In this document: positions 1 through 61,646 of the stretch, piece after piece
Numbering within the stretch: position 1 is the first letter of the stretch
Layout: every line of letters starts with the position of its first letter
NCBI GenBank assembly: GCA_904063045.1
Contig: CAJFCJ010000014.1
Location: 1,733,643 to 1,797,642, forward strand
From: Dimorphilus gyrociliatus
Taxonomy: Eukaryota > Animalia > Annelida
Direction of reading: 5' to 3'
Length of the DNA: 64,000 nt
Notes under the pieces: model-generated
What the model saw: only the letters and a program-made list of their open reading frames with translations
Told to the model about the DNA's origin: nothing
Database searches by the model: none
Position numbers and translations under genes: made by a program

Positions 1-3000
1 GCTGGTCGATTTATTTCAAGTACAGAACAATTAGCTCTGGCTATACTTCATCCCAGAAAATTTTGCGTTTATGCCGTGTCAAAATCATCGGGTAACAATG
101 ATCGGCTCTGTCACTATCAGTTGAAAATAGCTTACGAACACAATTTAAAGAGAACGTCTTTTAATTTCTGCTATGGACCATTCGGAGGTAAATTAGTTTA
201 TTTGATTTGATTAATAACTAAATAACATTGGATATATTTGAATATAGGCGTAAAAAACAAGGATTTAGTTTGCATTCAATCGCTCGATGGAAGTATCAGT
301 ATTTTGGAACAAGACGCTTTTTCATTTACTAGACATCTACCTGGTGCCTTACTTCCTGGACCTTTCAGTTACGTGCCAAGTACAGATTCTTTTGTCACAG
401 TATCTTCAAATAGATACTTGGAAAGTTATAAGTATCAAATTCTGGCTGTAGCTGCAGATTCTAAGGAGGATTCAAAATCTGGCAAAAAAGTGGCTGTACG
501 TAAACTCTAGCCTTCAATAATAATACTATTCCAAGTGATCTTATTACTGAATATATATTATTATTTTTTATTAGAGTGACTGGTCTTTAAATATAGGCGA
601 ACAAGCGGTAGAAATTTGTGTAATGCATACCTCAACTGGCTATATGATACTCGTAGCCACGGAAAGGAGTATATTTTGCGTAAAGGAGAATGGAAAAGTG
701 ATCTGGCAGAAAAAGTTGGATTTAGTACCTTCTGCTTGTACTCCGTTCTTTGCGCCATCTTCCGAAAATATTCGATATATCTTATCTGTTCATTCCTCAG
801 AGAATTTGTTTATTTACGATAAAACAATTATGATATGGGCTGCTCAAATTCACATAGAACCTGTTGCTATAAAAGTAATACGAGAGGGTGAAATGAAAGG
901 TGGAATAGTTGTATTAAGCGAAAATGGAAATATTCAAGTTCTCTACTTGGGAACGGATCCCGAACTGATGGCTCCTCCAAGCATGTCCCAAAATCGAGAT
1001 ATGGATTATGCTGCAATGGATAGGGAACTGAAGCAGTTACAAAGTATTATCAAAAGTAAAAGTTCTTCTGCTGGAGGTAGGAATGATAGCTTTATACTGT
1101 ATAATTAATATCTGTATGAAAATTACATAAAATTCTTCTATACTCTTTTCCTAAAAAAAGTTGTCCTCCCAACAAAAAGAGCTGAAGATGAATTGGAATT
1201 TATATGTCAGCCTGAACCTCAGCTAGATTCTCCTTCTGTAAGTATCTCAAACATCTTTTTCACTACCAAATAATAATGGTTTTTAAGACTAACACTAACA
1301 ATGATAAATATAATCTAGAAAGGGAAAGTTCTTTCCCCTGACATTCCTCAGTGTTTAGAACAGTACTGCATTGATGTAAGGAGCAAAGCTAAAAACTTAT
1401 CTATGCTTTTTTTCTTGAAAATTCACTATTAGCTTTCAAATTTGGAAAAGCGTGAGTTCTACGATTGGAACGATCCTATTTTAGAGACTTTAAAGATTGA
1501 TGATTTTAAAATAACAATAATTACTCACAAGGCACGTTTTGATCTTAGATTTCCAGTTAAAAATCGAAATAGACTAAGAAATTATTCATGGTCATACTAC
1601 AAAAAAATCCATAAGATTTTTACTGGGAAATAGACATTTTTTTGCACGAATGATTTGAATTTTCATTCCTCCGACAGCTCCTTTCGACTATTAATGATGG
1701 TTTACTAATCATAATTTAACTTAACAGATAGCCTCCAGTGAGATAAAAGAAGATGTTCCCTCCCTAACCTATAAAGTAACGATTAAGTGCAAAGCTGCAT
1801 TAAATGATGTGGCTCTATCCATCCACATCCCAGCTCCTTTTGCCACACCCACAACTCTTATTAATATCCCTCACATTGACGCTTCGAAACCGTATGAACA
1901 TTCCTTCCCAATTTTTATGAAATGGAATATGGCTCCTTCTAATTTGAGTTTGAGTACCTCGATTAGATTCAATACGTCACAAGGATCACCATACACTGCC
2001 ACGGCAACATCGAAAATTCCTCTTCGACTTTTTGCTCAAAATGCAATACCGATGAAAGCTAACGAGCACAAAATCACACTCAACTCAAATACGGATGCTG
2101 TTGATTTAGCTAAATTGTTTCCTGATATTCTCGCAACTTCACAAACTGAACCTCTGGCAGCTATTGGACTTCAAGTTTTTGGTTTCAAGGAAGTTGTTAC
2201 AATTTTAGCATCTACTAGTAAACGTTATAGAGTTCAAAGTGATAACTTTACATTAGTATTTGGAGTCGTCGATGAATTAGTATCGAGATTAAAAGCCTAC
2301 CATACACGACTAGGACAATATCATTTCATTTTAAGTTTTGACTCCCAGCTACCTTTAACAGAATACTTTGCTGCAATTGACGCCCACTTCGATCTACGAC
2401 AAAAAGAGAATGAACTCTCGTAATATAAATTATTTATCCTCTTTATTATTGATAAATGTATACTTATATATGACTTATCTCTACAGAAAAACTTTAGGAG
2501 AGAAGACTGGTCAGTTAAGAGCCGTTCAGAGACGGTTATTAACAAGATTTAAGGATAAAACTCCATCTCCTCTAAATAATTTGGATACACTTTTAGATTC
2601 AACATACAAACAGGTAATATTCTATTTTCAGCAATTGGCAACTTTTAGAAACCATCTCTTTCATTTTTTTTAGATTTTAGCACTTGCAGACTCTATTGAA
2701 AGGAATAGAACTTTACTTTTAAAATGTTCATGTGATCTTGAAGCTTGTACAAGAATATTTTGCCTTCTACTAAAACTGTGGACTCAAACAAATATGGATG
2801 ATTTGGAATATGGAATTTTAGAAAGCGTTTTATGGCCAAACGGATGCTCATCCCTTTCGTTAACTCAGGGTTGGCATGAACAAGTTGATGCTACTATAAC
2901 CTTCTTATTAAGGACTAGTTTGGCTAAATCGTCGAAAGATGCAACTTTAAATCCTCAACCGTTGCAGATATTAACTGATACAGTTAAATTGAAGAAACAT

Positions 3001-3422
3001 TTGGCCTTGTTAATCGATAGATTGTCGAAAGGTGGCAAAATGATGATGGAGGGAATCAAGGAGTCTCATCTGGTGGGAAATAATGAAAAGAAGAAAGTAG
3101 AAATCAAAAAAGCAGAACCAATAGCAAAGCCGCGTCCACAGCATAGACCAGTACCAATGCCGTCGAACACTAGTTCAACAGCGATAAGTGAGGAGCCACT
3201 TCCCGAGGAAGAAGAAGTAGCAGTTAGGAAATTTTCTAAGAGAGAGGAACCTACTCCTAAAGTTACTTTACCCTCACTAGATGACCTTCCTCCATTAAGA
3301 GGTAGATACTTTAAATATGAAATAAAAAACATGATTATATTCAAATACTTTAATGCATAGGTGGTACTGCAAGAGAAGGAAAAACAACTGAGGATGTTCC
3401 TGATTTGGACGACTTAGCATGA
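1..3422 (+). CDS. BBS9: Bardet-Biedl syndrome 9 / PTHB1, BBSome subunit (5'-partial, multi-exon)
   Basis: Spliced exons read LALAILHPRK..YEHNL.RTSFNFCYGPFGG|VKNKDLVCIQSLDG..LPGALLPGP..YVPSTDSFVTVSS, LYLGTDP, YRVQSD, QLRAVQRRLLTRFKDKTPSPLNNLDTLLDSTY, GWHEQVDATITFLLRTSLAKSSKD. Last exon (3361-3422) ends ...PDLDDLA-TGA. Confidence 0.95.
1319..1375 (+). other. BBS9: Candidate 57-nt in-frame cassette exon of BBS9 (KGKVLSPDIPQCLEQYCID)
   Basis: AG at 1317-1318, GTAAGG donor at 1376, phase 0-0 matching the flanking exons (donor 1238, acceptor 1727), open frame, tandem ACTAAC at 1288-1299. Confidence 0.5.
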
Positions 3423-4000: not shown

Positions 4001-6773
4001 CTACATGTGCTCAGGATGATCTCTCAAACAATCTATAAATCTAGTTGGCGACAGGTCACCCACACATATGTAATGAACAGCCGTAAAAATAGGAAATCTG
4101 AAAATTATATTGTTTAAATTAAGTTGTTTGAAAGGTATCTTTAAGTATACCTATTCTCAAGATTATTCTTTCTGAGCATATGATTAACTTCTGCAGCTGT
4201 TATTGGACCTTGTAGACTTTGTCCATCTAACATTTCTATTTCAATTTCTTTGAGGCTCTGTTCATTAAAGCAATAAATTGTTGTTAGAATAGAGTCTATG
4301 GATAGTGGAATGGTTTGAGAGGAACCTTTTTCGGATATTGCCGAACATATGCCTCCGCACAACGTCTGTTTCTTCCACTATAACAGGTTGTAACAAGATC
4401 AGCTATTCCACAGCTTTCCAAAAACGTCTCAATTTTCGATTCTATTTATAAAAGTTCGTTAATAAGATTATGTTTTAGGTAAAACAGTATTAAAAATATC
4501 TATTTTCAGCCGTGCAAAATTAGAATATATAGATGAAATATAGTTATTTATATTTTACTATTTGTCATCAACCTAGATTAAGTCATTTGAATATGTTGAG
4601 TTAATCAATGAATTAGAATATTTAATAATTAGATCATAGTTTTAACATTAGCTGAGAAGGTATCAAATTAAATTGGTAATCTCAGTTTTAGTTACCGTAA
4701 TTTTTCTATAAGCAAATTAATACTAGAGGATTGATGAAAATACCCCTGATTGCAATGTTTTATCCAATTCTTATCTTAATAAGTAATAGTTTAAAATCGA
4801 TTGCGAAAACATCGAGCAAGATAGTTTAGGTATTCAAAAACAAAACGTACGCCCAAAAAATTCTTCAATGAATTTAACCATTTCCATTAATCCCAAACGG
4901 ATTACTGCTGCTTTTGTGTTATCTCCAAAGCCTAAACCTTCGGTAAATCCAGCACCAACTGCTACAATATTCTGTTGTGGGAAAACAAAAGAAAAAAACA
5001 GCAGAATAAACTGAATCTAACAATTCTACGCTAACATTTGGCACCATTCAACTGAAAAAGAAAATTGATCTCTTTTTAAAAAAAGCAAGATTTTACAATA
5101 GGTCATGCATTAGTTAGTACCACAATATTTGGGATAACTAGTTTTAAAAGTAGCAGTTGGTATTCAAAGATTCTGAAAAATGTCATTAATTTGGATAAGT
5201 CTATCTGAATTTTCTAGCTCTAAAGATTTTTCATCCTACTATTTATACAAATAGATATTGAAATAGATGAAAATATATCGAGAAATTTTTATGATAAGAT
5301 GTTACTCTCTTTAGGATAATTGACTAATGCACGGCTAAAAATAGCTTAAGAGTCCAAATAATTACGATTGTCAAGTAGAAGGTAGCATAGTCCCCGAATC
5401 TCGGCAAACCCTAAACGAACTACAGCGGCTTTTGTATTTGCAATCATGTCTAGAGCATCAGCTATTCCCGCGGCAATTTCCATTACGTCCTGCACTAATT
5501 TACTCGTTAAATGGTGCCAATAGAAGTATATTACAAGTGAAATACATGAACTTAAACATGAAAAAAAACGCATAAATAAATTTCGTTAGCTTGACATAGT
5601 CTGTTAACAATTAGATGTTACATGGCTAATTAAGTAAAAGTAACTATTATCTGTTTAATTACCAAATTTGAAGATTTAGTTAAGCGTTTATGATTAAATA
5701 GAAGTTACTGAAGAAGTTTTAAATTGGTAATGTTTACATAGGCCGTTAAGTATACACTATTTCCTATTGTATTAGACCTCAATAAAAGACATACACAACT
5801 ACTGAATACAGTTAATTCTATTAAGTATTTAACCTTCCCTAGAAAACAAAAACATTGTATTTTTTTTTAAAGAAAAGTTACTTGAGCAATATGTTAGAAT
5901 GTAAATTTATATGGTCGAGTATATTAAACATGGAGACCTGTTAATGATAAAAACAAATACCTCACCTTTAGAGCTCCGCAGAGCTCTACAGTTGCTTCGT
6001 CTTCCACAACTACTATTCTAAAGTAGGGAGTTTGCATTAAATCTTTGAAAGTATTACCTATATCCTTATCTTTGCAACCTATGAAATATGATTAATAGTA
6101 AAAAAAACTATCTTATGAAGCTATCTATGTTATAATAATTAAACAGTACCAATTGTTGCTTCACAATAATTCTCTCTAGCAACCTCGGAAGCAATATTAG
6201 CTCCCATTAAAACGGCGCAAGGTATAGACAGTTCTCGGCGAATCATATTCGAAATCAAATCTAATCCAGCTTCAGTAATGTCCAATCCCTTCAATAACAA
6301 CTTGAGTAAATAAAAAAACTAAAGAACAATTTTAAAAAACCTTAATTAAGGTAATTCCCACAGCACTTTCCTTTACTTTTCCTTTTAGTGTCTTACAAAT
6401 ATTTTTCATAAATTGGTGAGGGAGTACAAAAACCAATACGTCTGCATCAGATGCTGCTTCGATGACATCGGGAATAGCGACAACATTTGCAGGAACTTTA
6501 TGTCCGGGCAAATACTTGGTATTCTCATGGTCAGTATTAATAATTTCGGTTAATTTTCGTCCTTCAACCATCTCTTCAAAAACATACATTGACACAGAAG
6601 TCTCAAAATCCTTTGTGTTTTGAACATTATTTCCAATTATTTTGGCAATGACCATACCCCTATAAAAATATATATCTATATATGTATGTACAAACAAATA
6701 AATACAGCTGTGGCTAGAACAATTTTTTTTACCAATTTCCAGATCCAACTATGCATACTTTTTTTGGAGACAT
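4001..6773 (-). CDS. GPD1: NAD-dependent cytosolic glycerol-3-phosphate dehydrogenase (GPD1/GPD1L family), 350 aa with exon A
   Basis: Exons 6773-6733, 6659-6341, 6288-6150, 6078-5966, [4971-4851 or 5489-5366], 4441-4326, 4257-4151, 4097-4001, all GT-AG and in phase. Motifs [79 protein letters not shown]. Confidence 0.97.
4500..4516 (-). promoter_or_regulatory. Putative splicing docking site (pairs with 5328-5344)
   Basis: Plus-strand CTATTTTCAGCCGTGCA is the reverse complement of 5328-5344 apart from one position that forms G.U in the minus-strand transcript. Confidence 0.7.
4851..4971 (-). other. GPD1: GPD1 mutually exclusive exon A (canonical; [40 protein letters not shown])
   Basis: 121 nt, cag acceptor, gtacgt donor, phase 0 to phase 1; close to the canonical GPD1 sequence. 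Confidence 0.95.
5328..5344 (-). promoter_or_regulatory. Putative selector sequence downstream of GPD1 exon B
   Basis: Plus-strand TGCACGGCTAAAAATAG begins 21 nt after the exon B donor and forms 17 contiguous pairs with 4500-4516. Confidence 0.7.
5366..5489 (-). other. GPD1: GPD1 mutually exclusive exon B (divergent; [41 protein letters not shown])
   Basis: 124 nt, gcag acceptor, gtaatt donor, same phases (0 to 1) as exon A, open frame, homologous NTKAAV.RLG core. Confidence 0.85.
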
Positions 6774-17798: not shown

Positions 17799-20700
17799 AA
17801 TAATATTTTGTTTAGCTCTCTACATTGATTGGACATATCTTAAAAACAAGTAATGATCACACATTGAGCCTACACTCCTTACAACTACTTGCCAATGATC
17901 TCCACAGTCGAAGTATTTTACAGAATATATCAAGTTTACAACAATTAGTAAGTATCAATGAGTCTTCCAATTGTCATAACATTGTGTGTTAATGCAATAA
18001 AACCTCTTAGGGTCAAAAGATGATGTCATATATCACAAATATTTTGGAATCTTTTGATCGAATCAAATTAACTCAGGCAACTTGTGAAGAATTGGAAGAA
18101 ATCTCTGGATGGCTGAAGCGAAACTTTTATATCGCAAAAAATGTGAATATTGTTAATAAAATTATTTAAGTAAATAATAATTTCTATTCTTTTTAATTAG
18201 CAAACTCAAGAAATTTCAACAAAAAAACAAGAAGTTTTTGAAGAAAATTGTCGATCTGTTATCGATAAATATCAGAGAGCGATTGATGAACATTCAACAG
18301 AATTATCAGATCAAGCAATGCATGTAACTCAAAGAGTTGTTAACGAACAAAACAAATTGAGAAAACGATTATTAGCCTCTATAAAAATCAGTTTATCCGC
18401 TCAAGTTTTGTCTAGAATAAGATGGCAAAGGATCGTTGATGATCTGAGCCATGAGAGGGCTTCTTGCTACGCCGAGCATATATACCCAATGTCCTGGGAA
18501 TTAGACCCGACGGAAGGACCGATGAGAGTTAGAAAAAGGTTAAAGAGGTGCTCGTTAGGTGTTAACAAAAGATTTTTGTTGGATGATGAACGATGGAAAT
18601 TAGAGGAATTGAGATGCAAACAACCTTTATCTTACCTGTTTGAAACTCAAACCTCAGATTCAGAAGCATTAATCTATCAGCTACATACTAATGAAAAGTT
18701 GTCATTAACTGCACGATGCTTGCATGTTCAACCTGCAAGAGAGGTAAATGGAGAGCTTCTTCTGGGAGAAAAATCTCTCTATTTTATCGGAGACAATGTT
18801 CAATCAATAACTTTACCGTTTGACGGTATTAAAAGCGTTCTTAAAAGACGGCACGCTCTAAGAGATGTTGCATTAGAAGTATTTTTAATCGACGGAACAA
18901 CTTGTCTCTTCGCTCTGAGTACATCAAGTGAAAGAGACGAAGTAGTAAATAATTTATTAATGAATGAACTGCCGAATCTAATAACAATAGAGAACATCGA
19001 TCAAGTACAAAAGATGTGGAATGAAAGAGAGATAACGAATTTTGAATATTTAATTCACTTGAATACTTTATCAGGTAGAAGTTACAACGACTTAATGCAA
19101 TATTTTGTCTTTCCATTCGTTTTATCAAATTACGATGAAGAGATATTAGATCTAAAGGATTCAAAAAATTATAGAATCATGGCCAAGCCCATATCTGTTC
19201 AATTTAAGGAATGCGAAGCCAAATACCTACAAACTTATAAATATTTAGAGAAACAATACGAAGAAATTTGCCATTTAGGTTCTAAATTCGAAGATGAAGC
19301 CTTTCGACCGAAACCTCATCATTACGGTTCACACTACAGTAATTCAGGAACAGTTCTTCACTTTTTAGTTAGATTACCTCCCTTTACACAAATGTTTCTA
19401 GAATATCAAGATAATAATTTTGATTTGCCGGATAGGACTTTTCATTCAATGGCTACTTCGTGGAGACTATCCGCATCTGATTCAACAACGGACTTCAAAG
19501 AATTAATACCTGAGTTTTTCTTTCTACCTGAATTTTTAATGAATAAGGAAGGTTTTAATTTTGGAGTTCGTCAAAATGGTACTTCAGTTTCATCTGTAGC
19601 CTTACCGGATTGGTGCGAAAATAATGCTAGATATTTCATTATGATACTTCGACAGGCTTTAGAATCAAATTTTGTCAGTTCAACTATATCAAATTGGATT
19701 GATCTTGTTTTTGGTTATAAACAAACAGGTAAAGCAGCTGTTGAAGCTATAAATGTCTTTCATCCAATGACTTATTATGGTGTAAATTTTGAGAGTATCG
19801 AAGATACTATGAAAAGAATAGCCGTTCAAACAATGATTAAGACTTATGGCCAAACTCCAAAACAGTTATTTATATCACCGCACGTTTCACCAAAGATTCC
19901 AAATGAGATATTATCCATTCTTGATCCTCCATCCGCTCTTCCCGGCGTCTGTGGTATTAAGTGGGGAAAGTATGTTGGAAGTCCCGAATATCCTCCTCCT
20001 GTTGAAATATGGAGAAAGTTTTATCAAACTCCAGTTGAACATTTGGTTGCATCTGTCACTGGTCAAGTTTTCGGATTAGAGAAATATTCGAGTTTAGTGA
20101 CGAAATATAGTAAAAAAGAGAAGACTAAAGAAGAACTTTGGGCAGCTCTGGTGCTATGGAATAATGTTGATAGCGTTCTAAGAATAACGAAAAAGCGAAA
20201 ACTACCTCCTGTTAATTTAGTACAATGGCAAATAGGTGGTGCAAGGCCAACTTGCTGTGCCGCGGTACATCCTTGTAGATTATTACTATTCGGAACGGAT
20301 ACAGGACTAATATGTATCTTTAAAATAAGGTTAGTCGCCATACTATAATTAGCACGTCTTTTTTTATCGTTTCTCCATTAATAGATATACAACGGGAAAT
20401 GCTAGTTGTATACAAGTAAGAGGTGGTTCAGAACTATTAAAGTTATATGGACATTCGAAAAAAGTTAATCAAATACAAGCTTGTTCCGCTTTTTCAATAT
20501 TTGCTAGTTGTAGCGAAGATAAAACAATAATTATATGGGATTTGAATAAGTAGGCTTACAATTTTTTCCAAATTAAACCCTAAGACTTATCAGTTTCTTT
20601 TTATCTTTTTCTATTAGATTAATTTATGTAAGATCCATACAAACTCACGAATGTCCTGTTCATGTATTGGCAATTAGCGAAACACTTGGTGATATTGCTA

Positions 20701-44600: not shown

Positions 44601-47600
44601 CGCTTGAAGAAAATCTGGGAGCCTACTTTCACGTAAGAAATTAGTATAAGAATTTTAACATAAAAGTAACACTTCTTGTTTATACAGAATCATATACAGT
44701 CGGATATCTGCTGAAGACAAACAGGTCAGTTTTTTTTTTCTTTTATACCTTTTCTTATCCAAATGTCTCACGTTATGTCGTGGCTGATGTAGAAAGAATT
44801 TTTGTACTTTTTTCTTCAGTGCTTTTTAATGCGCTAAATCTCGTTTACTTTTTTCGCTAACTGCTTTGTGAAAAAAAATATTTATTTTTTTTCTTTTCCC
44901 CCAACAATTGTATCTAAAGTTGGCTGAATTACAAAAATTATACATATACTTAGACATAACTATTTTACGTTAAGCATTTTATTTGAAATTTTACATATTT
45001 TGTGAAAGTTGTTCATCGTTAATCATTTTAAATAATTCATAAATGAGCTTGTTTAATTCCATTTGCATGAAACATCGTAAAATCTAAATTCATGTACTTT
45101 TTAATGCTATTTTAATTTACATTTATTTTTAGCTTAATTGACTTAAATTTCTGTATAAAGTTTTAATAGCTGGAGATTTTTATCATATGCATAATTTCTC
45201 TCTATAGCAAAAATATCAGCGAATAATAGCTATTATATCTTTAAAAATGATTTTTTTTTCTTATTGATAAGGTTTTATGATGAGATTTTTTTCTGCAATT
45301 GGTTAATCATATTCGTTAAAAAGTAATGTGCTAAAATTTTGTTTACGTACTAAGTTTCCGTCTATTGCTTGTTTTAATCTTTTACTTTCTTGAGTGAAAA
45401 TTTCAGTAGAATCTAAAATCTAGTGGCATGATGAATTTACAGCATGCAATTACCTGCTCTGAACACAATTGAGAAACGAAATGAACATATTCTTTAAAGC
45501 TTGAAGTCGCTTTGCTTGAAGCACAGCATGATATTAGATATTTATTATATTCTAATAATACTTAAAGTTCTAATGTCAGTTTCTCTACTACTCTGCTGAT
45601 TTATTTATTAATACGTTCAATCTCAAGGGGTTTCACCAGAAATGAAAAGTCTTTAAAATATAGTAGTAGATGTGTATTTAGAAAAGACAACTAAGAATTT
45701 CACGAGTCCATCGCATGTAGAATGTATATCTTCAGAATGAAGCTGGGCGCTCAACTCTGAGGTGGACGACCGAAGAGGTTGATCGAAAGCTTAATGAAGG
45801 AGAAATTCAACGTTATGACGTTGTAGAGTATTTAAAGACTCACTGTTCTAAGGAGTTTATGAAGAGAAACAAACTAACTGGACCATGGAAAACTGTTAAG
45901 AAGACAGTAAATTGTCAAAATCTCGTAAAAATTTACAAGGTGCATTGCAGAAGTGATTGTTTTAGTAGCTTCGTTTGTCGGTCGGAGTTGTACATTCTTC
46001 TATTCCTTTACTATTTAATTCTCAAATTGACAAGAGTTCAATTTGAAAAAAGTATACTAAATATATGCTGTCAATGTTAAATATATACAGTATATATACA
46101 CTATATATACATTATCTAGCATATATGTTATATTGTGTTCTACTCCGACTACTGTTCTGTATTTTTTGATTTTTTCTGTACATTTGATAATTTTATATTA
46201 ATATTATATAGGAGTTTTTAATTATTTAAAAATAGCTTGCAAAATAGGAAGTATTATAAAAAATTGATATTTGCATTTATTTAATACTGTTAAAAAATTT
46301 ATTAACAACTCAACAGCTTAATTAATTTCATTTTAAAAAATGTATATTTGTCTTCAGTACTTGATTTTTGAAGTTGTTCCTTTTTTAGTTATTTAATAAT
46401 CGTTAATCGTTATTAACTAGAAAAAGGAAATATATTAAAATTAACTTTCTTGATTGTTTGTGAAGGCGTGCATATATTTCTATATGTTTGGGTCTTCGAA
46501 AGGAAATCGAAGCATATTTTATTTTCTCAAATTGCTTTTTTGCTAATATATTCTATCCTTACAACAGGAGTTCACGGAAACTGAAGGATCCGACTTACTA
46601 CCCATTAATGATCTACTTCTAGTTGATGACTTTACTACTTCTTCAGAAACTGATGTCCGAAGCGTTGAAGAGGTTTTACAGCTAATTAAGATACTTCATA
46701 AACTCTCGAATAGTGTCTCTCAATTGAATTTGACAAATGAGGAATTGGAATCTCGTAAAATAACTAACAAACTTACGCAACAGCTACACGATAGTGTTGT
46801 TGTAGCATCCTCCTGTTTACCAAATTGGTGTTCGACTCTGTCTTCAAACTGTAGAATATTGTTTCCTTTGGAAAACAGAATGAACTACTTGTACGCTAAC
46901 TGTTTTGGAGTTGAGAGGAGCATAGTTTGGCTGCAATCAAAAAGAGACGCTGTTTTAGAAAGATGGAGGGCTGCTACAGGATCAAGACAACGAGATGATG
47001 CTCACGAAATGCAGATTGGAAGATTGAGACATGATAGAGTAACTATTCCTAGGGATGATGGAAAACTATTTGAGTGGGCTCAACAAGTAATGTTTAAGCA
47101 TGCAAGACTGAAATCAGTTCTCGAAATTGAATTTAAAGACGAAGAAGGAACTGGATTGGGCCCAACATTGGAATTTTATGCACTTATTGCTGCTGAGCTT
47201 CAAAGAAAAGATTTTGGTATGTGGCTCGTCGATGATGATGCCATGGCTAAGGTGAAGCCAGTTCAAGGAGATAAGCCTGTTGGATTTTATGTGCAAAGAA
47301 GTTGTGGATTATTTCCTGCTCCACTACCTCCTAATTGTTCACTCTTGAAGAAAGTTGAAAGATCATTTTTATTTTTGGGAATTGCCCTTGGAAAGTGTCT
47401 TCTAGATTCAAGGCTTATGGATATGCCACTCTCACCAGCATTTTTTAAAGTTCTCTGTGGAGAAGAACTTGACGATAGCGACTTTCTGCATATATATCCC
47501 CACAGAGCGAAGTTTATTCTACAATTGCAGGAATTAAATGAAAAAAGAGAACAAATTTTAAGTAACAAAGAGTACACGGAAGAACAAAAGAAACAAAGTC

Positions 47601-48253
47601 TTTCAGATCTAAAGGTCGGAGAACCTGCAGTTAACCTAGAAGATTTAGGATTAACCTTTTGCTTCAATCCGTCGTCTACATGTTATGATTATGATCATCA
47701 CGAGCTTACGGAAAATGGAAGTCACGTTGCAGTATGTTTAGAAAATGTCGGAGAATATGTTGAAATTGTTAAGGACTTTTGTTTGAATTCTGGTATCAAA
47801 AAACAAGTTGAAGCAGTTAGACGCGGATTTGAATATGTTTTACCAATCTGCAAATTGAATTGTTTCAGTATTTCAGAACTGCAGCTAATGATTTGCGGTG
47901 AACAATCGCCTAATTGGACAAGGGAGGACGTATTAGAGTATTGCGAACCTAAAAATGGATTTGATAAACAATCTGCTACATTTCAACATCTGGCAGCGGT
48001 ACTTGTTGATTTCGAATCAGAGGAGCGAAAGTGGTTCCTACAATTCGTTACTGGCTGTTCGTCCCTTCCTCCTGGTGGTTTGGCCAACCTCAATCCGAGA
48101 TTAACTGTTGTCAAAAAGGATGGAAACGACCATTCTTATCCTTCCGTCAATACTTGTATGCATTATTTGAAACTACCTGAGTATTCTTCCCAAGATGTCC
48201 TAAAAACGCAATTGCTAGCTGCTACGAAGCATAGAGGATTCCACCTTAATTAG
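35665..48253 (+). CDS. HECTD1: E3 ubiquitin ligase HECTD1 (ARM-ankyrin-SUN-MIB/HERC2-BTHB-HECT)
   Basis: [136 protein letters not shown] (catalytic Cys), GFHLN*. Confidence 0.97.
37595..37615. repeat. (TA)n microsatellite in a HECTD1 intron
   Basis: Direct reading. Confidence 0.85.
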
Positions 48254-48897: not shown

Positions 48898-51800
48898 ATG
48901 AAACCTTTGAGAGTATCACCAGTCATGAACTCCGAATCTTCTGAGAGAATCGTAGGAAAGGTGGAAAGGGAGCGAACTAAACCATCGTCGTCCCTCACCC
49001 AATTCAGAATACTCTGTTGGAAACATATACAAATGATAAATGGGAGCAAAGGAAAATTTTTACTAGAATTATTAATACCAATATTTCTTGGTATAGTATT
49101 TATCATAATAAGACTTTCAGCCAAACCAACACTGTTTGATCAACCAACAATATGGAATTCTTTTCCAATAAAGGAATTTAACGGCGTACTTACAAATCTG
49201 TTTATTCCTTCAACCTAAACAGTTACTGTTATTGTGTTGTTTTTTTTGCAGGAAATAAATAGAACTTTACTGCAAATTCATTCTGCACCGAAGAATCGTA
49301 TTACTGAGGAACTTGTGATGAATGTGAAAGATTATCTTAAGATAGACAAAATACCCCTTTGGTATAATAAGGAATCTGATTTGGAAACGGAAGTTGTTAA
49401 GCAACCTGGCGAGAGATATAAGAATTCTATTGGTATTGTTTTCAGAGATGTAAATGATAGCCTACCTGATAGCGTCGTATATTCGTTAAGATTGCCAATT
49501 GACCCTGACGGTAAACTTGGGCAAAAAGATTGGTTTACAAGAAGTGTTACCAATAATATGCCAAGTCAAGCTCCTGTAGACAAATCAAATATATATGGAG
49601 GTTCGCCAAACTACGTAGAATCTGGTTTTTTAACATTTCAATTAGCATTGGATCACGCAATATTAAAACATCGTTTACCGAATATTGATGAGGCTAATTT
49701 CGAAGTAAGAATGAATAGATCGCCTCATCCACCTTATAAAGACGATCCAGTAGTTCGTATAATGCAATTTATGGCCTTTGTTATATTTATGTCATACAAT
49801 GTCTTTACGGCAAATTTCGTTAATGGCGTTGTAGAAGAGAAGGAGAAACGTTTAAGGGTTCGCATCTATTACATAATTGTTTTTGTATTTATATTTTCTT
49901 TATCATCTTCAGGAATTTATGAGAATATATGGTCTTAAAAGTTATCTTAACTGGCTTTCATGGATATTTAAATCACTGATCACTCTTATAGTCATTACAA
50001 TATTATTAACGCTCTTCTTAAAAGTTAAAACAAATAATGGCTCATTTTTTCCTCAAAGTGACGTAACTTTTGTCTTCTTTTTCTTTTTTATGTATGGATT
50101 GAGCGTTCTCTCTTTTTGTTGTATAACGGCTGCCATTTTCAATACGGTACGAGTAGCATCTGGATTAACAAGTCTGATAACATTTTTAACCTATATGCCT
50201 AATTTTTTCCTGGCAAATCAATGGCCAAAATTATCTGCTGGTGCGAAATGGGGAACTGGGATACTATACAATATGGCTTTAGGTAATGGTTGGTCTATTA
50301 TTCAAATTCACGAAGGAGCTGGCTATGGTGCAAAATGGTCCAATATCAATTCTTATGTTACGGTTGATCAAAATTTTAAGCTCTCATATGTTCTCGCTCT
50401 TTTTACCATTCAAATTGTAATTCATTTGCTGATTGTATGGTATTTAGATAATGTATTTCCTGGAGAATACGGAGTCCCAAGACCCCCATATTTTCCCTTT
50501 ACAAAGAACTATTGGCTTGGTACAACCCCCAAACAAGAAAGTCAGGAGAATATTAGAGATTTAAATTTTGGAGATATGTTTGAACATCCGGATTCCTCAT
50601 TAAAACCAAGTATTAGAATAAGACAATTAGTTAAGACTTTCGATGCAAATGGCAAGAAGACTACCGCTGTAGATAAACTCAATATGGATATATATGAAGG
50701 TCAAATAACCGCTCTACTCGGTCACAATGGTGCTGGAAAATCAACAGCGATGGCCATGTTAACTGGTCTTTTAAAACCAAGTGACGGAAATGCATACATT
50801 TATGGTCACAGCATAAAAACAGACATAGAAAGTGCTCGACAACATTTAGGCTATTGTCCTCAAGATAATGTTCTATTTGACCTTTTAACTGTTGAACAAC
50901 ATTTGAGATTCTTTGCCGAACTTAAAGGATGTCAAAAGGAAAATTTACAACGAGAAATTGATAGCAGTTTGAAATTTCTTGATCTTTTCGAAAAGAAGCA
51001 CGATTTGCCTGGTGAACTTTCGGGAGGTCAAAAGAGAAGACTTTGCATAGGAATAGGTCTCATAAATGGATCGAATACTTTAATTTTGGACGAGCCAACA
51101 GCTGGTCTGGATCCGGAAGCCAGGAGAAAAATGTGGGACATACTACAAAAGATAAGAAACGAAAAAACCATAATATTGGCTACTCATTTTATGGATGAAG
51201 CCGATCTTTTGGGTGATCGTATAGGAATTATGGCGAATGGTCAATTGCAATGTATAGGATCTAGTTTGTTTCTAAAATCGAAATTCGGAGTTGGATATCA
51301 TATGGTAATGGCAAAAGCATCTAATTGTGACGTTGACAAGATATCACAAACAATTAGACAGTATGTTCCAAATGCACTTCTGGAATCGAACATCAGTTCA
51401 GAACTATCGTATATTCTGCCGAAAGAAAGTTCTGAAAACTATGAGGAAATGTTCAGGGTTATTGAAGATAATCTGAAAAGCTTAGGAATCAATTCATTCG
51501 GAGTTTCTATAACAACAATGGAAGAAGTTTTCCTAAAAGTTGGAGAAATTACAAAAGCTGATGGAATAGAAAGACTACAGAAGAAGCATGATACATCCTC
51601 AGAGATTGCGAAGGATACTGCTGAAATAACGGCACAGACAACCGGTATATTTAATACTATAATATTTACCATAAAATATTAATCTTCTTTGCATTTCAGC
51701 AATTTTTCAATCAAATCAAATAAGCGGTTTGTCTTATCATTTCAATCAAATGAAGAGTCAATTTTCCAAGAAGTTTTCTATCAGTACATGTTTCAAGCTC

Positions 51801-54245
51801 CTATTACTTTTTCAACTATTATTCCCGGCTTTCCTAGTTTTACTCCCAGTTATCAATGCCAGAAACATTGAAAAATCCACGAAATCTGATAATTCGCCAA
51901 AAGATATGACATTAAGTATGGTGAATGAGAATAATATTCTATTTGGACCTTCAATTCAAACTTTTGAAGATGGTTACAAGAGTTATGTCACAAAATTTAA
52001 GGGAACATCTTTCGAAACTACGGACAATCCAAATATGACAGCTGCACTTATTGATATTGGAAGGAAAGAGGTGACAACCTATTTGAACCGATACTTAATT
52101 GCTTGTAAAAAATCAAACGACACAAAAATAGCATTTTTCAATGCACAATACTATCATACAGCGGCTATATCTTTGTCAGCGTATACGAATGGATTAATGA
52201 AGGCCTTTGTGGGAGAAAAGTATTCGATCAAAACAATCAATCATCCCTTACCTTTTCTTCCTGATGCTCAAGCTAAAAAAGATCAACGTTCTACCAATAT
52301 TGTTTCCGCTGCAATCATTAGCAATTTTGTCATATCAGCAGCTCTCCTATTCAACTCCTTTTCTTATTATTTAATAAAGGAGAGAGCATCCGGTTCAAAG
52401 CATTTGCAATTTGTATCTGGCATAAAGATCCTAAATTATTGGATACCGCATTATATTTTCGACGTGTTATTTTGTCTATTGGGTCTTACATTTGTTTTGG
52501 CTGCTGCGTGTGCTGGCAGATTGAGGGGCTTAGTAGCGGATCTCAACTACCTAAAGGCATTTACTCTTTCAATTGGATTAGCAATGTCTGGAATGCCTTT
52601 AACCTACCTAATAAGCGGATTTTTTACTACACCAACCGCTGGCATCACTTTCATTTTAATGTTTTTTATATTCCTTGGCATCCTCCCTAATATATTAGTT
52701 ATAGTTATGAGAATTATTGATACTAGTGCCTCTATGAACGTCGCTATTGCGCTGGACTGGTTATTTACTACATTCTGGCCCTCTTACAATTATGGTATCG
52801 GTTTAACAAATATATTACAAAAGCAGGCAAACTTGAAAGCATGTAGTGATATTGATAAAGATATTATTCGAGAATACTGCGAAATCAATTCAGAATACAT
52901 ATGCTGTAAAGAAGAAAACACAAATACAAATTACTTTTCTTTCGACAAATTAGGAATTGGAAAAAATCTTTTGTTTCTCTTCTTTCAAGCCGCTTTATAC
53001 TTTGGCCTTGTTATATTTAGAGAATCGAATATTTTTATTAATCTCAAGCGAAAAATGAACAATAGATTAGTCAGCATTCAGGAACAGTTAAATAATGATC
53101 ATGATACTGAAATGGTATCTAGAGTTGGACAAACCCTTGATGAAGATGTCGAAAGAGAAAAAAATAAAATAGCATCTTTGGAAATTCATAATGGTACCTA
53201 TGATTACATTATTGTTGCTCAGGGATTATATAAGTATTACGGAAGTTTACTAGCTGTCAAGGACCTATCTTTAGGTGTTAAGAAAGGAACGTGTTTTGGT
53301 CTTTTAGGTGTAAACGGAGCGGGAAAAACTACAACCTTTAAGATGCTTACTGGAGACGAGGTGATGAGTAAAGGATCCGCTTATATCAACGGTATCAACG
53401 TTTCAACAGACCTAGATAAAACTCACAAACTTATTGGTTATTGTCCTCAATTCGATGCCATCATTGATGAACTGACAGTAACGGAAATGATTAATCTGTA
53501 TTGCAGAATAAGAGGGGTAGATAATGCGAAGGAGCTCTGCAATGAGCTATTAGACATTCTTCTATTGCGCGACCATGCCAAGAAGCTAACTGTTAATTTA
53601 TCTGGAGGAAATAAGAGAAAGTTATCAACGGCCTTGGCATTTATTGGAAATCCACCAATAGTGTTTCTAGACGAACCAACTAGCGGCATGGATCCGTTAG
53701 CCAAGCGAATTGTATGGGATGTAATCACCAAGATGAGAGACAATGGAACGTCCGTAGTGCTCACCTCTCATAGTATGGAAGAATGTGAAGCACTTTGTAC
53801 GGAAATGGCCATTATGGTTAACGGAGAATTCAAATGTTACGGCGGAGTTCAACATCTGAAATCAAAATACGGCGAAGGCTACTCGTTAATTGCAAAAGTA
53901 AAATCATCTCTCAATGATGAATATTCATTAAGCGACGCAACCGAAGAGCTTAAAGGCTTTGTTGAGTCAACTTTCGAAGGTTCCAAATTGAAAGATGCTC
54001 ACGACGGTTATGTTCATTATCAAATTTCGTCAACGAACGCTCGTTGGAGTACTCTATTCTCAATTATGGAGAAGGCGAAAGAAAGATATCGAATAGAAGA
54101 TTACTCAGTGAGTCAAACAACACTAGAAGAAGTCTTTATAGGTTTTGCTAAGCTTCAACACGACAAAGAGCACATTGATATTCCTTTTAAGATTAGATGT
54201 GGAAATTGTATGCAGTTCATATTTTGCTGTGGGTGTTGTGGATAA
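48898..54245 (+). CDS. ABCA-subfamily full transporter, ABCA3-like, copy 1 (4 exons, ~1,720 aa)
   Basis: Exons ~48898-49185, 49252-49857, 49912-51644, 51700-54245. Intact NBD1 (GHNGAGKS, LSGGQ, LILDE, ATH) and NBD2 (GVNGAGKT, LSGGN, VFLDE, TSH); EKEKRLREFM, KERASGSKHLQFVSG. Confidence 0.95.
51074..51456 (+). repeat. Near-identical direct repeat with 56980-57362 (NBD1 Walker B to R1 region)
   Basis: By-eye alignment at offset 5906 shows one mismatch (51302 A vs 57208 T) in 383 bp. Confidence 0.85.
53232..54148 (+). repeat. Identical direct repeat with 59083-59999 (NBD2 and R2)
   Basis: By-eye alignment at offset 5851 shows no mismatch in 917 bp; identical antisense 105-aa ORFs at 53447-53764 and 59298-59615 agree. 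Confidence 0.9.
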
Positions 54246-54531
54246 TTTATTAAAATGACAATTTTGTACATATATACTGTATATATTCACCAGTGAATTT
54301 TTGGTTTGTTGCTGTCATATGATTTGGGTCCTTTGCTCATCAGTATTTAACTGATATTATGATAAAAGTACCTTATTTCAAATTTTTTGTTTAAATAAAA
54401 TAAATTGCAATATAATTTTTTAAAAATAACCCTGTCTTTTATAGAGCGATATTTGAGGGTTATTAATAGGTTTTTTCGCGGGGGAAATGAGTAATACTGT
54501 TGTGCCCGAGTGTGTCTCTATTTTATGCATG

Positions 54532-54540
54532 GTCACGTGA
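54532..54540 (+). promoter_or_regulatory. CLEAR-like E-box (GTCACGTGA) upstream of ABCA copy 2
   Basis: 9/10 match to GTCACGTGAC, ~180 nt upstream of the ATG. Confidence 0.35.
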
Positions 54541-54715
54541 TAATTTACCTTTATATTCTACTTGTGAAAGCTGATCTATCCAAATGAGTTACAGCTCTTG
54601 CTTTAAAATGAATATTTGATTGCTTCAATAAACGTAATATTACATTTAGATAATTAATTGCTATCACTATTATAATTAAATCTTCATATAAAGAGATTCT
54701 TGCGAAATCGTCCAT

Positions 54716-57700
54716 ATGACGTCGCCAAGAATTGTGCCGGAAATGCAATCTTCATACAGCGTTTCAAAGCAGAATCTGAAAAAAAATGGATCGTCAGCTA
54801 TAACTCAATTTAGGATTCTTTGCCGGAAAAATTTTCTTTTGGTCAGTAGCAGTAAAGGTCAGCTTGCCATCGAATTATTGATACCTCTATGCCTGGGACT
54901 TCTGTTCTTCACGTTAAGAAATGTAATTAAACCAGAGGTATTCGATCAACCAACTGTTTGGTCAGCATTTCCTGCTAAAGAATTTACAAATGTAAGTCAT
55001 TTTACATATAGAATAAGGACAAGAACAAGAGAATATTGAAAGTCTGTCAAAATCAAATAAAATAATCCAATTCTCTTTACAGAAAACGAATGGAACATAC
55101 CTACAAATTTATTCTACACCCAAGAATGCTCTTACAGAACGACTGGCCGAAAGTGCTCGAAATTTTCTTAATATCTCTAATCGACCTAAATGGTATGATA
55201 AAGAATCCGATTTGGAAGCAGATATCGTAAAACAACGTGGAGACGATTATAAGAATGCTATTGGTATCATATTTAAAGAAATGGATAATGGTAAACTTGC
55301 CGATGAGGCAGTCTATTCTTTAAGATTCCCTACCGATCCTGATGGAAAACTTGGTGCAAAGGATTGGTTTACTAGGGGTGTACAGAGACAATTTATTACA
55401 TTAAGTCCTGTAGAAAAGGATGTTATTTATGGAGCTGATCCAAGCTATGCCGAAACTGGGTTTTTACCATTACAATTAGCTATAAATAGGGCATTATTGA
55501 GAGAGCGTTCGTCACAAATTAGCGAATCCTACTTTGACATATTAATGAACAGACTACCTCATCCACATTATACTAGTGATCCAATTCCGACAATGATGCC
55601 CTTCCTCGCATTCATAATATTTATATCATTCAACGTTAATACGCTAAATTTTATTAGAGGCGTTGTACTAGAGAAAGAGAAACGCCTTAAGGTATATACA
55701 GTAGATATATATATATATGTACTAATATATATTTTTTATATTTGCAATTTACAGGAACTGATGAAAATTTGTGGCTTAAAAAGTTCCCTTAATTGGTTCG
55801 CTTGGATACTGAGATCTATGATTGTACTCGTAGTCGTTTCATTGTTGTTTACATTCTTTTTATGTGTACAAACAAAAAATGGAGCATTCTTAGCAAAGAG
55901 TGATCCATCACTCATTTTCGTATTCTTTCTCATGTACGGAATGTCAGTTCTTTCCTATTGCTGTATAGTCTCAGCTATTTTTTCTCAAGGTTGTACTATT
56001 TTATTTCACTAGGAAACAATAATAACTTATAATCTTTTTTAAATAAATAGCCAGAGCTGCTGCAACAGTTGGATCATTATTTAGTTTCTTCACCTATATG
56101 CCAAATTTTTTCCTAGCCAATAGATGGGAAGCAGTATCCACAGGTGCGAAATGGGGAACTGGAGTACTATACAATATGGCTTTGGTACATGGATGGACAT
56201 TATTTCAACTTCATGAAACAGCTGGCTATGGAGCTAAATGGTCCAATATCAATTCTTATGTGACAGTTGATCAGAATTTCAAAATAGCTAATGTACTTAT
56301 ACTTTTCACCATTGATATTGTTGTTTACCTTTTTATTGCTTGGTATTTGGACAACGTATTTCCGGGGCCATATGGTATTCCAAAACCACCATATTTTCTA
56401 TGTAGTAAGGCATTTTGGACAGGTAGTCCTGTTGAAACAGATAATTTTACAGAAGAAATAAATGACACTCAGTTGAATGATATGTTCGAAAAACCTACGG
56501 ACAACCTAAATATAGGCATAAGAGTAAGGAAGCTTGAAAAATCTTTCAGTGTGAGAGGAAAGAAAACTAAAGCTGTTAATGGACTTGATATGGACATCTT
56601 TGAAGGTCAAATAACTGCTCTACTCGGCCACAATGGTGCCGGCAAATCGACAGCGATGGCCATGTTAACTGGTCTTTTAAAACCAAGCGGCGGAAATGCT
56701 TATATTAATGGTCACAGCATAAAAACAGATATAGAAGGTGCTCGACAGCAGTTAGGCTATTGTCCTCAAGATAATGTTGTGTTTGATCTATTAACTGTTG
56801 AACAACATTTGAGATTCTTTGCCGAACTTAAAGGATGTCAAAAGGAAAATTTACAACGAGAAATTGATGATACAATCAATCTCCTTGGGTTAAATGATAA
56901 GAGAAAAGATTTTGCAGGTAAGTTGTCCGGTGGTCAAAAGAGAAGACTGTGCATTGGTATTGCCTTGATTAATGGATCAAATACTTTAATTTTGGACGAG
57001 CCAACAGCTGGTCTGGATCCGGAAGCCAGGAGAAAAATGTGGGACATACTACAAAAGATAAGAAACGAAAAAACCATAATATTGGCTACTCATTTTATGG
57101 ATGAAGCCGATCTTTTGGGTGATCGTATAGGAATTATGGCGAATGGTCAATTGCAATGTATAGGATCTAGTTTGTTTCTAAAATCGAAATTCGGAGTTGG
57201 ATATCATTTGGTAATGGCAAAAGCATCTAATTGTGACGTTGACAAGATATCACAAACAATTAGACAGTATGTTCCAAATGCACTTCTGGAATCGAACATC
57301 AGTTCAGAACTATCGTATATTCTGCCGAAAGAAAGTTCTGAAAACTATGAGGAAATGTTCAGAGATATTGAAGATAATCTGGAAACTTTAGGAATCACTT
57401 CATTCGGAGTTTCTATAACAACAATGGAAGAAGTTTTCCTAAAAGTTGGAGAAATTACAAACGCTGATGGAATAGAACGCCTTAAAAAAACTGAAGATTC
57501 AAAGGAACTGTTGGGGGAAAATACGGATTTTACCCAACTGGAAGCAAATGTTTTATTTCAATCAAAAACTTTGCAAGATTTCAATTTTACTTTCGAACAA
57601 CTGAAAAGTCAATTTTCAAAGAAACTCTCAGTTACATTAAATAATAGGATTTTGGCTTTCTTTCAGATGATTTTTCCTGAAATTTTAGTTTTATTAGCAG

Positions 57701-60401: not shown

Positions 60402-61646
60402 TCAGTTCGATTTTAGCACTTTAATTAAATGGCTATGATCTAAATCATTTGCTAACTCTAATGGGGTTTGGCCATTGGCTTTTAAACTTTTGTCAGCTCC
60501 GTACTTTATTAACATTTTAACAATCTCTTCATGACCTTGTAATACTGCTGAATGAAGTGGTGTACAATTACCACATTCTTTATTCCTTGCGTTAATTTCA
60601 ATATTTGGCTGTTTGCATAAGATTCTTACTATTTTTTCCGATCCAGCCGTTACGGCGGCGTGTAGAGGTGTATTTCCAGATTTAGAGGCAATGTTTATAT
60701 TACAATTAAATTTTAGTAATAGTCTTAAAATATCGGTTTGACCCTTCATTGCTGCAATAAAGGCTAGAGATCTTCCAGAGTTATCTAGTACTTTTATATT
60801 TATCTTCTTGGTAGTTATGAGATAGTGAATTACATCAATAAAACCAAGGTTTATTGAGTAAAACGCTCGTTGGACAAATAACGGCAATGCATTCTTTGAA
60901 TCAATCAGTTTTTGAGGTTCGTATGAAGTAATTTGCCTAAAAAATGAAACTACTGCAAACCAAACGTTAACTATTGTATAAGCTCTTAAACCCAGAGCCG
61001 CTTGAGCATGTGTACGAACTTTGGTTGTGATTGTAACGTCACTTAATAATTTTCGGTACTCATCAGTCCTACCGGAAGTTAAAGTATTTAAATAATCGAG
61101 AAAAATAAATGAAAATTGTGATGAGAGTAGTATCTTTGGATATTCTTTGAGAGTTGCTTCCATTATTTTTCCGATATCAGAACCGGATAGTTTTCCATGT
61201 TGTAATCCCGATTTAAATAAGAGTCTCATGGAATCAGACACAATTCCAACTTCCAGTCTCATTATTTCAACTTTTTTATTGTCTGGAAAGTCTGTAAGCC
61301 AGAAATGTGCGAAGTGAACAAAATTGTCTCTAATCCATTCTACCATATCGTCCACTTTTTCATTGCATTCATCCAACCATTCTGATAGAAGAGGAGTATC
61401 TACAAATGCCAATACATCATCTAGTTTAACTGTTCTCTTAACTGGCGGCAAGGGAGGAGGTTTAGGTAAATGATACGGTGGTGGGGTAACAACTGCGGTT
61501 CCTGAATCAGGAGAAGAATGTCGTGGCGTCAATGGAGGCGTACTACTAGCACTTCCAATACCAAGACCTTCATCTGCACTTTCGTCAATGAAAGACAAGC
61601 GAGAAATGCAAATTAGCTCCCGCAAGTCGCGAATACTTCGACTCAT
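60402..61646 (-). CDS. Intronless protein with unrecognised helical N-terminal domain and C-terminal ankyrin repeats (~414 aa)
   Basis: Single ORF; likely ATG at 61646 (MSRSIRD). Ankyrin repeats GRSLAFIAAMKGQTDILRLLL, GNTPLHAAVTAG, NCTPLHSAVLQGHEEIVKMLIKYGAD, GQTPLELA. Pro-rich linker. Confidence 0.85.
   Translation of the reverse strand: MSRSIRDLRELICISRLSFIDESADEGLGIGSASSTPPLTPRHSSPDSGTAVVTPPPYHLPKPPPLPPVKRTVKLDDVLAFVDTPLLSEWLDECNEKVDDMVEWIRDNFVHFAHFWLTDFPDNKKVEIMRLEVGIVSDSMRLLFKSGLQHGKLSGSDIGKIMEATLKEYPKILLSSQFSFIFLDYLNTLTSGRTDEYRKLLSDVTITTKVRTHAQAALGLRAYTIVNVWFAVVSFFRQITSYEPQKLIDSKNALPLFVQRAFYSINLGFIDVIHYLITTKKINIKVLDNSGRSLAFIAAMKGQTDILRLLLKFNCNINIASKSGNTPLHAAVTAGSEKIVRILCKQPNIEINARNKECGNCTPLHSAVLQGHEEIVKMLIKYGADKSLKANGQTPLELANDLDHSHLIKVLKSN

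Follow-up and report, generated by a model that had tools for sequence, protein, structure and literature searches.

Probable mutually exclusive exons and predicted competing RNA stems in a glycerol-3-phosphate dehydrogenase gene of the annelid Dimorphilus gyrociliatus

Results

A tandem exon pair in the GPDH gene

We analyzed a stretch of 64,000 nucleotides (nt) from Dimorphilus gyrociliatus (contig CAJFCJ010000014.1, positions 1,733,643 to 1,797,642 of the forward strand), referred to here as the window, and all coordinates are positions within it. On its minus strand the window contains a complete gene for cytosolic NAD-dependent glycerol-3-phosphate dehydrogenase (GPDH) that has nine exons, including an alternative pair designated A and B (Table 1). 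A and B are probably a mutually exclusive pair that is maintained by selection in a compact AT-rich spiralian genome, with the choice between them made by two RNA conformers and with B producing a distinct isoform. Exon boundaries were assigned by pattern and by in silico splicing, and AG acceptors and GT donors were present at all GPDH exons.

Joining e1 through e4, A and e6 through e8 in silico produced an open frame of 350 amino acids (aa), and the version with B in place of A produced an open frame of 351 aa that ended at the same stop. The product terminates in ...HPEHM, as human GPD1 does. Inclusion of B and A together, or of neither, resulted in a frameshift and early stops. The introns flanking the pair measure 476, 394 and 409 nt as compared to 52-73 nt for the other five introns of the gene, and the window as a whole has a G+C content of 27-38 % and introns of about 60 nt. 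The acceptor of exon B has a weak, almost absent polypyrimidine tract and its donor reads GTAATT; the tract of exon A is long and strong. A first-pass annotation of this DNA had reported the coordinates, phases, AG/GT ends and frame logic of the pair, and all of these proved exact when the minus strand was read and spliced in silico. Its observation that the introns near the pair are unusually long was likewise reproduced by the lengths given above.

Table 1. Positions of the GPDH gene, its exons and the RNA elements around exons A and B
Feature	Position	Strand	Description
GPDH gene	4001..6773	(-)	350/351-aa open frames, Pfam PF01210 and PF07479, spliced RNA contigs
e1	6773-6733	(-)	constitutive exon
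e2	6659-6341	(-)	constitutive exon
e3	6288-6150	(-)	constitutive exon
e4	6078-5966	(-)	ends ...ELCGALK, phase 0; final codon corresponds to Lys204, the oxyanion-hole lysine (role from PMC9119304)
Exon B	5489-5366	(-)	124 nt, phase 0 to 1, 41 residues
Exon A	4971-4851	(-)	121 nt, phase 0 to 1, 40 residues, canonical version
e6	4441-4326	(-)	constitutive exon; encodes the D260, T264, R269 and N270 equivalents
e7	4257-4151	(-)	constitutive exon
e8	4097-4001	(-)	constitutive exon
Element TGTCTTTTATTGAGG	5777..5791	(-)	e4-B intron; identical in L002, present in L001
Stem I 5' arm UUGGCACCAUUUAAC	5506..5520	(-)	16 nt upstream of exon B; overlaps UUAAC branch-point-like motif
Stem I 3' arm GUUGAAUGGUGCCAA	5038..5052	(-)	66 nt upstream of exon A
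Stem II 5' arm CUAUUUUUAGCCGUGCA	5328..5344	(-)	21 nt downstream of exon B donor; invariant in L002
Stem II 3' arm UGCACGGCUGAAAAUAG	4500..4516	(-)	58 nt upstream of e6 acceptor; perfectly conserved 17-nt island
Stem III intronic 5' arm UACCAACUGCUAC	5150..5162	(-)	conserved island
Stem III 3' arm	4953..4965	(-)	within exon A, exon nt 7-19
Local hairpin	4968..5008	(-)	5008-5002 UAUUCUG pairs with 4974-4968 CAGAAUA; stem covers exon A acceptor AG

Exons A and B encode the same segment of the protein

The closest full-length relatives of the product are GPDHs that are 50-62 % identical to it. In Pfam searches PF01210 matched e2 (E 1e-21) and e3, and PF07479 matched A (1.8e-12), B (1.2e-6) and e6 (2e-9). 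Judged by these matches, the gene product is a cytosolic NAD-dependent GPDH of the GPD1 family (EC 1.1.1.8), a family whose reaction is dihydroxyacetone phosphate (DHAP) + NADH <-> glycerol-3-phosphate + NAD+. A representative protein library also contains a 776-aa protein (P0001) made up of two tandem GPDH units, 51 % and 33 % identical to the product of this gene; P0001 is either a fusion or two neighboring genes merged, in another organism.

The first-pass annotation had described A and B as a homologous tandem pair with exclusivity forced by the reading frame. This description held on BLASTP, where 13/31 residues were identical (E 2e-8), on the alignment of both exons to the same positions of PF07479 (13/14 to 47/50) with scores above the gathering score, and on in silico splicing. 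Used alone as a query, exon B retrieved only GPDH chains in the PDB and aligned to residues 206-238 of human GPD1. This alignment makes exon residue 1 the equivalent of N205 and the last codon of e4 the equivalent of K204, and because K204 is encoded by that last codon the exon swap starts exactly one residue past K204. The equivalents of K120 and K204 are the very last codons of e2 (6341) and e4 (5966), respectively.

Exon B is conserved in related species

Relatives of the locus were reached through exon-sized open reading frames (ORFs) on eukaryotic genomic contigs, and e2 used as the query found fragments at 80 % and 83 % identity. Contigs L002-L006 represent one species, the shorter contigs being 99.9-100 % identical to L002, and L001 represents a third species. 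The L002 locus is orthologous to that of the window, sharing its exon structure and the convergent PTHB1 neighbor downstream. In the window this neighbor, PTHB1/BBS9, has exons at 1809-3360 (+) that run convergent to GPDH (Pfam PTHB1_pf, PTHB1_GAE and PTHB1_CtH), and its presence at both loci indicates that synteny is conserved.

Between the window and L002, exon B was identical at 39/41 aa and exon A at 40/40 aa, and the lengths and splice sites of both were unchanged; the length of exon B is therefore 3n+1 in L002 too, like that of exon A. The L001 contig stops 45 nt into exon B, and the first 15 codons, located 551 nt past e4, read DVMEMAAGVADALDM. Substitution rates were obtained from Nei-Gojobori counts for the window and L002. 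Exon B had 15 synonymous and 2 nonsynonymous differences, corresponding to an omega (dN/dS, the ratio of nonsynonymous to synonymous substitution rates) of 0.026 at a dS of 0.83, and exon A had 11 and 1, respectively (omega 0.018, dS 0.59). The constitutive exons together had 114.7 and 40.3 (omega 0.048, dS 1.26). By these counts exon B is under protein-level purifying selection as strong as that on the rest of the gene, with synonymous sites near saturation. An omega of 0.026 with 39/41 aa kept rules out a relic, and a poison exon with a purely regulatory role is very unlikely. Exon B was thus found in two relatives at a dN/dS of about 0.03, where the first-pass annotation had allowed for an unconserved exon or a dN/dS of about 1. 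The dS to L002 was lower in A and B than in the constitutive exons, which, on these small counts, fits constraint on silent sites by splicing signals.

No B-like sequence was present in the more distant GPDH loci L007 and L009 or in two vertebrate GPD1L-like loci (L012 and L013), each of which had a single A-type exon. From this thin sampling the exon duplication looks lineage-restricted. The contig of L007 (7001-8265) is eukaryotic and AT-rich (28 % G+C) and comes from a Joint Genome Institute metagenome; its GPDH gene is nearly intronless, with the equivalents of e4 and A fused.

Exon B changes residues at the active site

In human liver GPDH, K120 and K204 form an oxyanion hole for the DHAP carbonyl, and N205, T264 and D260 support the oxyanion-hole network without contacting the substrate, with K204 contacting the carbonyl oxygen of N205; the residues of this active-site network are described as highly conserved (PMC9119304). 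Alignment to human GPD1 showed that isoform A has all of K120, K204, N205, D260, T264, R269, N270 and Q295, with the motifs ...GITLIK and ...CGALK among the aligned segments. Isoform B has Asp at the N205 position, and the other seven network residues lie outside the exon and are unchanged. The first-pass placement of the swap at the active site was fair, as exon residue 1 is the equivalent of N205 in the hydrogen-bond network that holds K204 (PMC9119304) and is Asp in B.

A and B were also compared with 35 diverse representative GPDHs. Exon B retains 11 near-invariant residues (A211, G212, D215, N222, T223, K224, A225, A226, R229, G231 and E234) and the NTKAAVxRLG core. In place of N205 (N in 32/34), A208 (A in 34/35) and G220 (G in 34/35) it has D, E and I, respectively, and the C-terminal helix of the segment is rewritten. 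All three species have the same residues at positions 205 (D), 207 (M) and 208 (E). Exon B looks, from these positions, like a specialized variant rather than the result of drift.

Predicted long-range stems coincide with conserved intronic islands

The pre-mRNA from e4 to e6 was scanned for ungapped duplexes in the window alone, before any relative was examined. The top duplex in the window, and also in L002, was stem II, with 17 bp and -25.9 to -28.0 kcal/mol. Stem I (15 bp, -22.3 kcal/mol) was the second-best duplex in both, and stem III (13 bp, -20.3 to -22.1 kcal/mol) ranked third in the window and fifth in L002. Stem I is predicted to loop out exon B and stem II to loop out exon A. The order of the arms along the RNA is I-5', II-5', III-5', I-3', III-3', II-3', with stem III nested in stem II and stem I crossing both.

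The three introns around the pair have diverged to 49, 59 and 38 % identical aligned columns between the window and L002, and the A-e6 intron is 409 nt long in the window and 630 nt in L002. Within these introns, islands were defined as runs of at least 11 identical bases. About nine islands lie away from splice sites, and five of these are the intronic arms of stems I-III (5521-5504, 5344-5328, 5160-5146, 5057-5036 and 4516-4500), each being the reciprocal best pairing partner of its counterpart. In the A-e6 intron the sole other identical run of at least 11 nt away from splice sites is 4801-4790. The stems gain weight because the alignment with L002 places conserved islands at their arms. 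Complementary conserved sequences of this sort in flanking introns are characteristic of mutually exclusive splicing that is regulated. The upstream arm of stem I is intact in L001 as well as in L002. Spacing was also kept, as the distance from the stem I 5' arm to the exon B acceptor (16 nt) and from the exon B donor to the stem II 5' arm (21 nt) are the same in both species, and those from the stem I 3' arm to the exon A acceptor and from the stem II 3' arm to the e6 acceptor are 66 and 58 nt in the window and 67 and 53 nt in L002.

In stem III a compensatory change replaces A5161-U4954 of the window with G-C in L002, by a substitution that is synonymous on the exonic side. RNAalifold applied to the local segment of the window and L002 predicted the hairpin at the exon A acceptor, in which all 7 pairs are invariant and the 5' arm falls within the island 5011-5000. 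Further islands, at 5791-5777, 5028-5015 and 4801-4790, are without a pairing partner. For the TGTCTTTTATTGAGG element at the first of these, the best partner reached -16.6 kcal/mol and was interrupted, giving no convincing pairing, and this element may serve as a splicing-factor binding site.

Exon A is the default form in the available RNA

RNA evidence was taken from contigs assembled from two samples, and such contigs drop rare variants. Data set X2 is from the organism itself (0.88 of sampled words, with spliced contigs at a depth of about 2000) and data set X1 is a coral metatranscriptome, a source that would fit a species encountered in marine aquaria. The e4-A joint, which connects 5966 to 4971 and skips B, was present in contigs of both X1 and X2, and the X2 contigs also joined A to e6 (4851 to 4441), e6 to e7 and e7 to e8. 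Taken together, spliced RNA contigs confirm the junctions e2-e3, e3-e4, e4-A, A-e6, e6-e7 and e7-e8. Neither double inclusion of A and B nor double skipping was present in the contigs of X1 and X2. Exon A is the default form in the available RNA, and exon B is a predicted alternative to it in mRNA.

Unspliced contigs of X2 had a depth of 258 over the e4-B stretch (5031-5995) and of 102 over the A-e6 intron (4412-4880). These unequal depths favor pre-mRNA over DNA as their source and are silent on the use of B. Removal of the intron holding exon B seems to be slower.

Other features of the window

At 49877-60096 (+) the window contains a tandem array of ABCA3-like transporter ORFs that have very few introns and measure 601, 838 and 1332 aa. 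Named relatives of the array are at best 41-44 % identical; for the 1332-aa ORF the top named hits are D. gyrociliatus proteins, at only this level, followed by molluscs, other annelids and further marine invertebrates. Large single-exon ORFs are present at 18318-20348 (+), 46724-48253 (+) and 60402-61724 (-); one of these large ORFs has BEACH/PH_BEACH domains, one a HECT ubiquitin-ligase domain, and one FAM220 together with ankyrin repeats.

Discussion

A two-conformer model for the choice between A and B

We propose that the crossing of stem I with stems II and III would create two exclusive and competing conformers. In the first, formed by stem I, exon B would be looped out and its likely branch point, a UUAAC located 18 nt upstream, would be buried. 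Both arms of stem I would be transcribed before stem II can form, and early formation of stem I in combination with the polypyrimidine tract of exon A would make A the default. An early stem I, a strong tract at A and a weak tract at B fit the finding of A as the default in RNA. In the second conformer, formed by stem II with the nested stem III and the acceptor hairpin, exon A would be looped out and masked, and the donor of B would be brought to about 80 nt from the e6 acceptor, near the usual intron size of roughly 60 nt in this genome. Frameshifted products with both exons or neither would presumably be cleared by nonsense-mediated decay (NMD). Isoform B would then be a kinetically or regulatorily distinct GPDH that is made in a tissue, stage or condition beyond those sampled.

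A number of observations weigh against this model. The first-pass annotation had proposed an isoform switch and named the junctions by which it could be seen. The tandem frame-exclusive pair and the conservation of B stood, and in the contigs of X1 and X2 the two junctions of A were present while those of B (5966 to 5489 and 5366 to 4441) were absent, with no contig joint touching B. The only X2 contig to cover the B region was unspliced; it started inside e4, continued through B as far as 5031 and had about 12 % of exon depth. A search of 5.8 billion proteins with exon B matched only the genomic ORF of the relative, and no annotated or assembled B protein was found. Scans of metagenomes for the spliced e4-B junction and for the degenerate motif DVMEIAAG... 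were empty, a blank that says little. With regard to the RNA structures, stems I and II show no difference between L002 and the window, which is conservation without covariation, and the two full sequences provided only one compensatory pair, in stem III. In dinucleotide shuffles (n=150) the ranks of stems II, I and III were reached in 3, 3 and 6 (p about 0.02-0.04), and these modest statistics on a single sequence are suggestive only. Any change in the enzyme properties of isoform B is, from the sequence, pure inference.

Alternative explanations

Several of the same observations could be explained if exon B were a decaying or unused pseudo-exon, with isoform A as the sole product and the complementary islands being protein sites or the result of chance. 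Only A junctions were seen in RNA, the polypyrimidine tract of B is weak, three near-invariant residues are changed in B, and the shuffle p for a single duplex was about 0.02-0.04, all of which agree with such a decay. However, purifying selection on B has been strong across a dS of about 0.8-1.3, its splice sites and length are kept in L002 and its start is kept in the third species, and the five intronic arms, predicted beforehand, all fell in perfectly conserved islands with one compensatory change, making an unused exon very unlikely. It is very unlikely as well that B is a conserved poison or regulatory cassette, the inclusion of which with A, or competition with A, would give an NMD-targeted RNA and tune GPDH output, with the stems serving this regulation. 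A cassette of this kind would explain the premature stop on inclusion of B and A, the conservation of intronic regulatory islands and the lack of a productive B-only transcript in the RNA contigs, but it has no need of a reading frame, and the frame of B is open with 15 synonymous as compared to 2 nonsynonymous differences and an omega of 0.026. Exon B also scores above the Pfam threshold for the GPDH C-terminal domain, keeps the 11 near-invariant family residues and has a length of 3n+1 like exon A. Both the pseudo-exon and the poison exon were rejected on dN/dS and on the retained family-invariant residues.

It is also conceivable, though in our judgment improbable, that the pair is real and exclusive and that trans-acting splicing factors, together with the reading frame and NMD, mainly determine the choice, with the islands being factor sites and pairing playing a minor part. 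Proteins govern many mutually exclusive pairs in other animals, and the pair in TCF3 is reportedly an example; such control would suit stems I and II, which lack covariation, and the partnerless islands at 5791-5777, 5028-5015 and 4801-4790. Factor sites would not predict that the islands are reciprocal best complements with 13-17 contiguous pairs, nor that one compensatory substitution is found, and the same four-element layout works by pairing in the Drosophila gene serpent (srp), as compensatory mutagenesis demonstrated. We favor a selectively maintained exon pair with a two-conformer RNA choice.

Significance

GPDH stands at the junction of glycolysis, lipid synthesis and the glycerol-phosphate redox shuttle, and its active site is among the best-dissected cases of transition-state stabilization. 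Exon B, as a variant kept by selection at the residue that holds K204 and at two near-invariant positions, would be a ready-made active-site experiment. At about 1.6 kb the locus would be a compact, unusually clean case of competing long-range RNA structures around a two-exon cluster in a spiralian, and possibly a minimal model for such switches where introns are usually about 60 nt. The case bears on the use of exon substitution in place of paralogues by compact genomes.

A more far-reaching idea, which we put forward tentatively and think unlikely on present evidence, is that a single GPDH gene of a miniature and gene-poor genome takes the place of two paralogues, with the RNA two-state switch installing the N205D/A208E/G220I segment and thereby altering catalytic bias or partners. 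If true, the switch could for example adjust how glycerol or redox equivalents are handled during hypoxia or osmotic stress, or it could be specific to a single sex or tissue, and a GPD1/GPD1L-like division of labor would be reached through exon substitution. It would also be the first documented dual-pairing splicing switch outside arthropods and vertebrates.

Comparison with known systems

Tandem-duplicated exons switch the properties of central metabolic enzymes in PKM1/PKM2 (exons 9/10) and in KHK-A/KHK-C, two cases to which the first-pass annotation had already pointed. PKM resembles the GPDH locus in the substitution of homologous exons in a glycolysis-linked enzyme with one default and one regulated form. 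The PKM exons are in-frame multiples, and the choice between them is made mainly through hnRNP/PTB and SRSF3. Exclusivity in PKM is thus not enforced by the frame, in contrast to GPDH, and the functional difference is documented in PKM and putative in GPDH. A 2020 eLife study by Tan et al. reportedly found that the mutually exclusive exons 6a/6e of coq-2 in nematodes, annelids and molluscs remodel the active site and switch between ubiquinone and rhodoquinone synthesis. Like GPDH, coq-2 would be a case of an active-site-remodeling exon swap in a redox-linked metabolic enzyme, from spiralian and nematode lineages, although the enzyme and the pathway are different. A tie of exon B to hypoxia or to another condition is speculation. 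In Drosophila, Gpdh1 produces the tissue-specific isoforms GPDH-1, -2 and -3 by alternative splicing; these differ only by alternative 3' exons that encode a few C-terminal residues, whereas the GPDH gene described here swaps an internal homologous exon beside the catalytic lysine. Full-text literature searches returned no paper on mutually exclusive exons in GPD1/Gpdh, nor any describing splicing of this type in Dimorphilus, in agreement with the first-pass statement that a switch of this kind was not known for this gene.

Exons 7a/7b of human and mouse ATE1 are mutually exclusive and homologous and are controlled by competing conserved intronic structures R1-R5 (PMC7797038). ATE1 is like GPDH an enzyme gene with homologous exclusive exons and competing conserved intronic elements, and differs in that two elements compete for one partner and that an ultra-long-range stem is added, whereas competition in GPDH would be topological, between arms that do not overlap.

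The arrangement matches that of Drosophila srp, where long-range RNA pairing is bidirectional (dual), upstream pairing selects the distal exon and downstream pairing the proximal exon, a pseudoknot is possible and the pairing was tested by mutation (Yue et al. 2016, PMC4691838). Both srp (exons 4.1/4.2) and GPDH combine a tandem pair of alternative exons with four conserved elements in the introns, one upstream of the pair, a further two between its members and the last downstream of it. The upstream stem loops out the proximal exon and the downstream stem the distal one in srp, as is predicted for GPDH, and the two stems cross in both genes. On anatomy and conservation the GPDH locus is built like this srp type of dual pairing, and by analogy pairing would control the choice between A and B. 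The two genes differ in that srp encodes a transcription factor and is from an arthropod, and GPDH encodes an enzyme and is from a spiralian, and in that GPDH has in addition a third stem that reaches into the distal exon, a hairpin over the acceptor of that exon, and a frame incompatibility that enforces exclusivity. Pairing in srp is backed by mutation, and that in GPDH is predicted from sequence. Duplication of exons in tandem, exclusivity enforced by the frame and competition between RNA structures are already well known, and the gene and the lineage are new for them.

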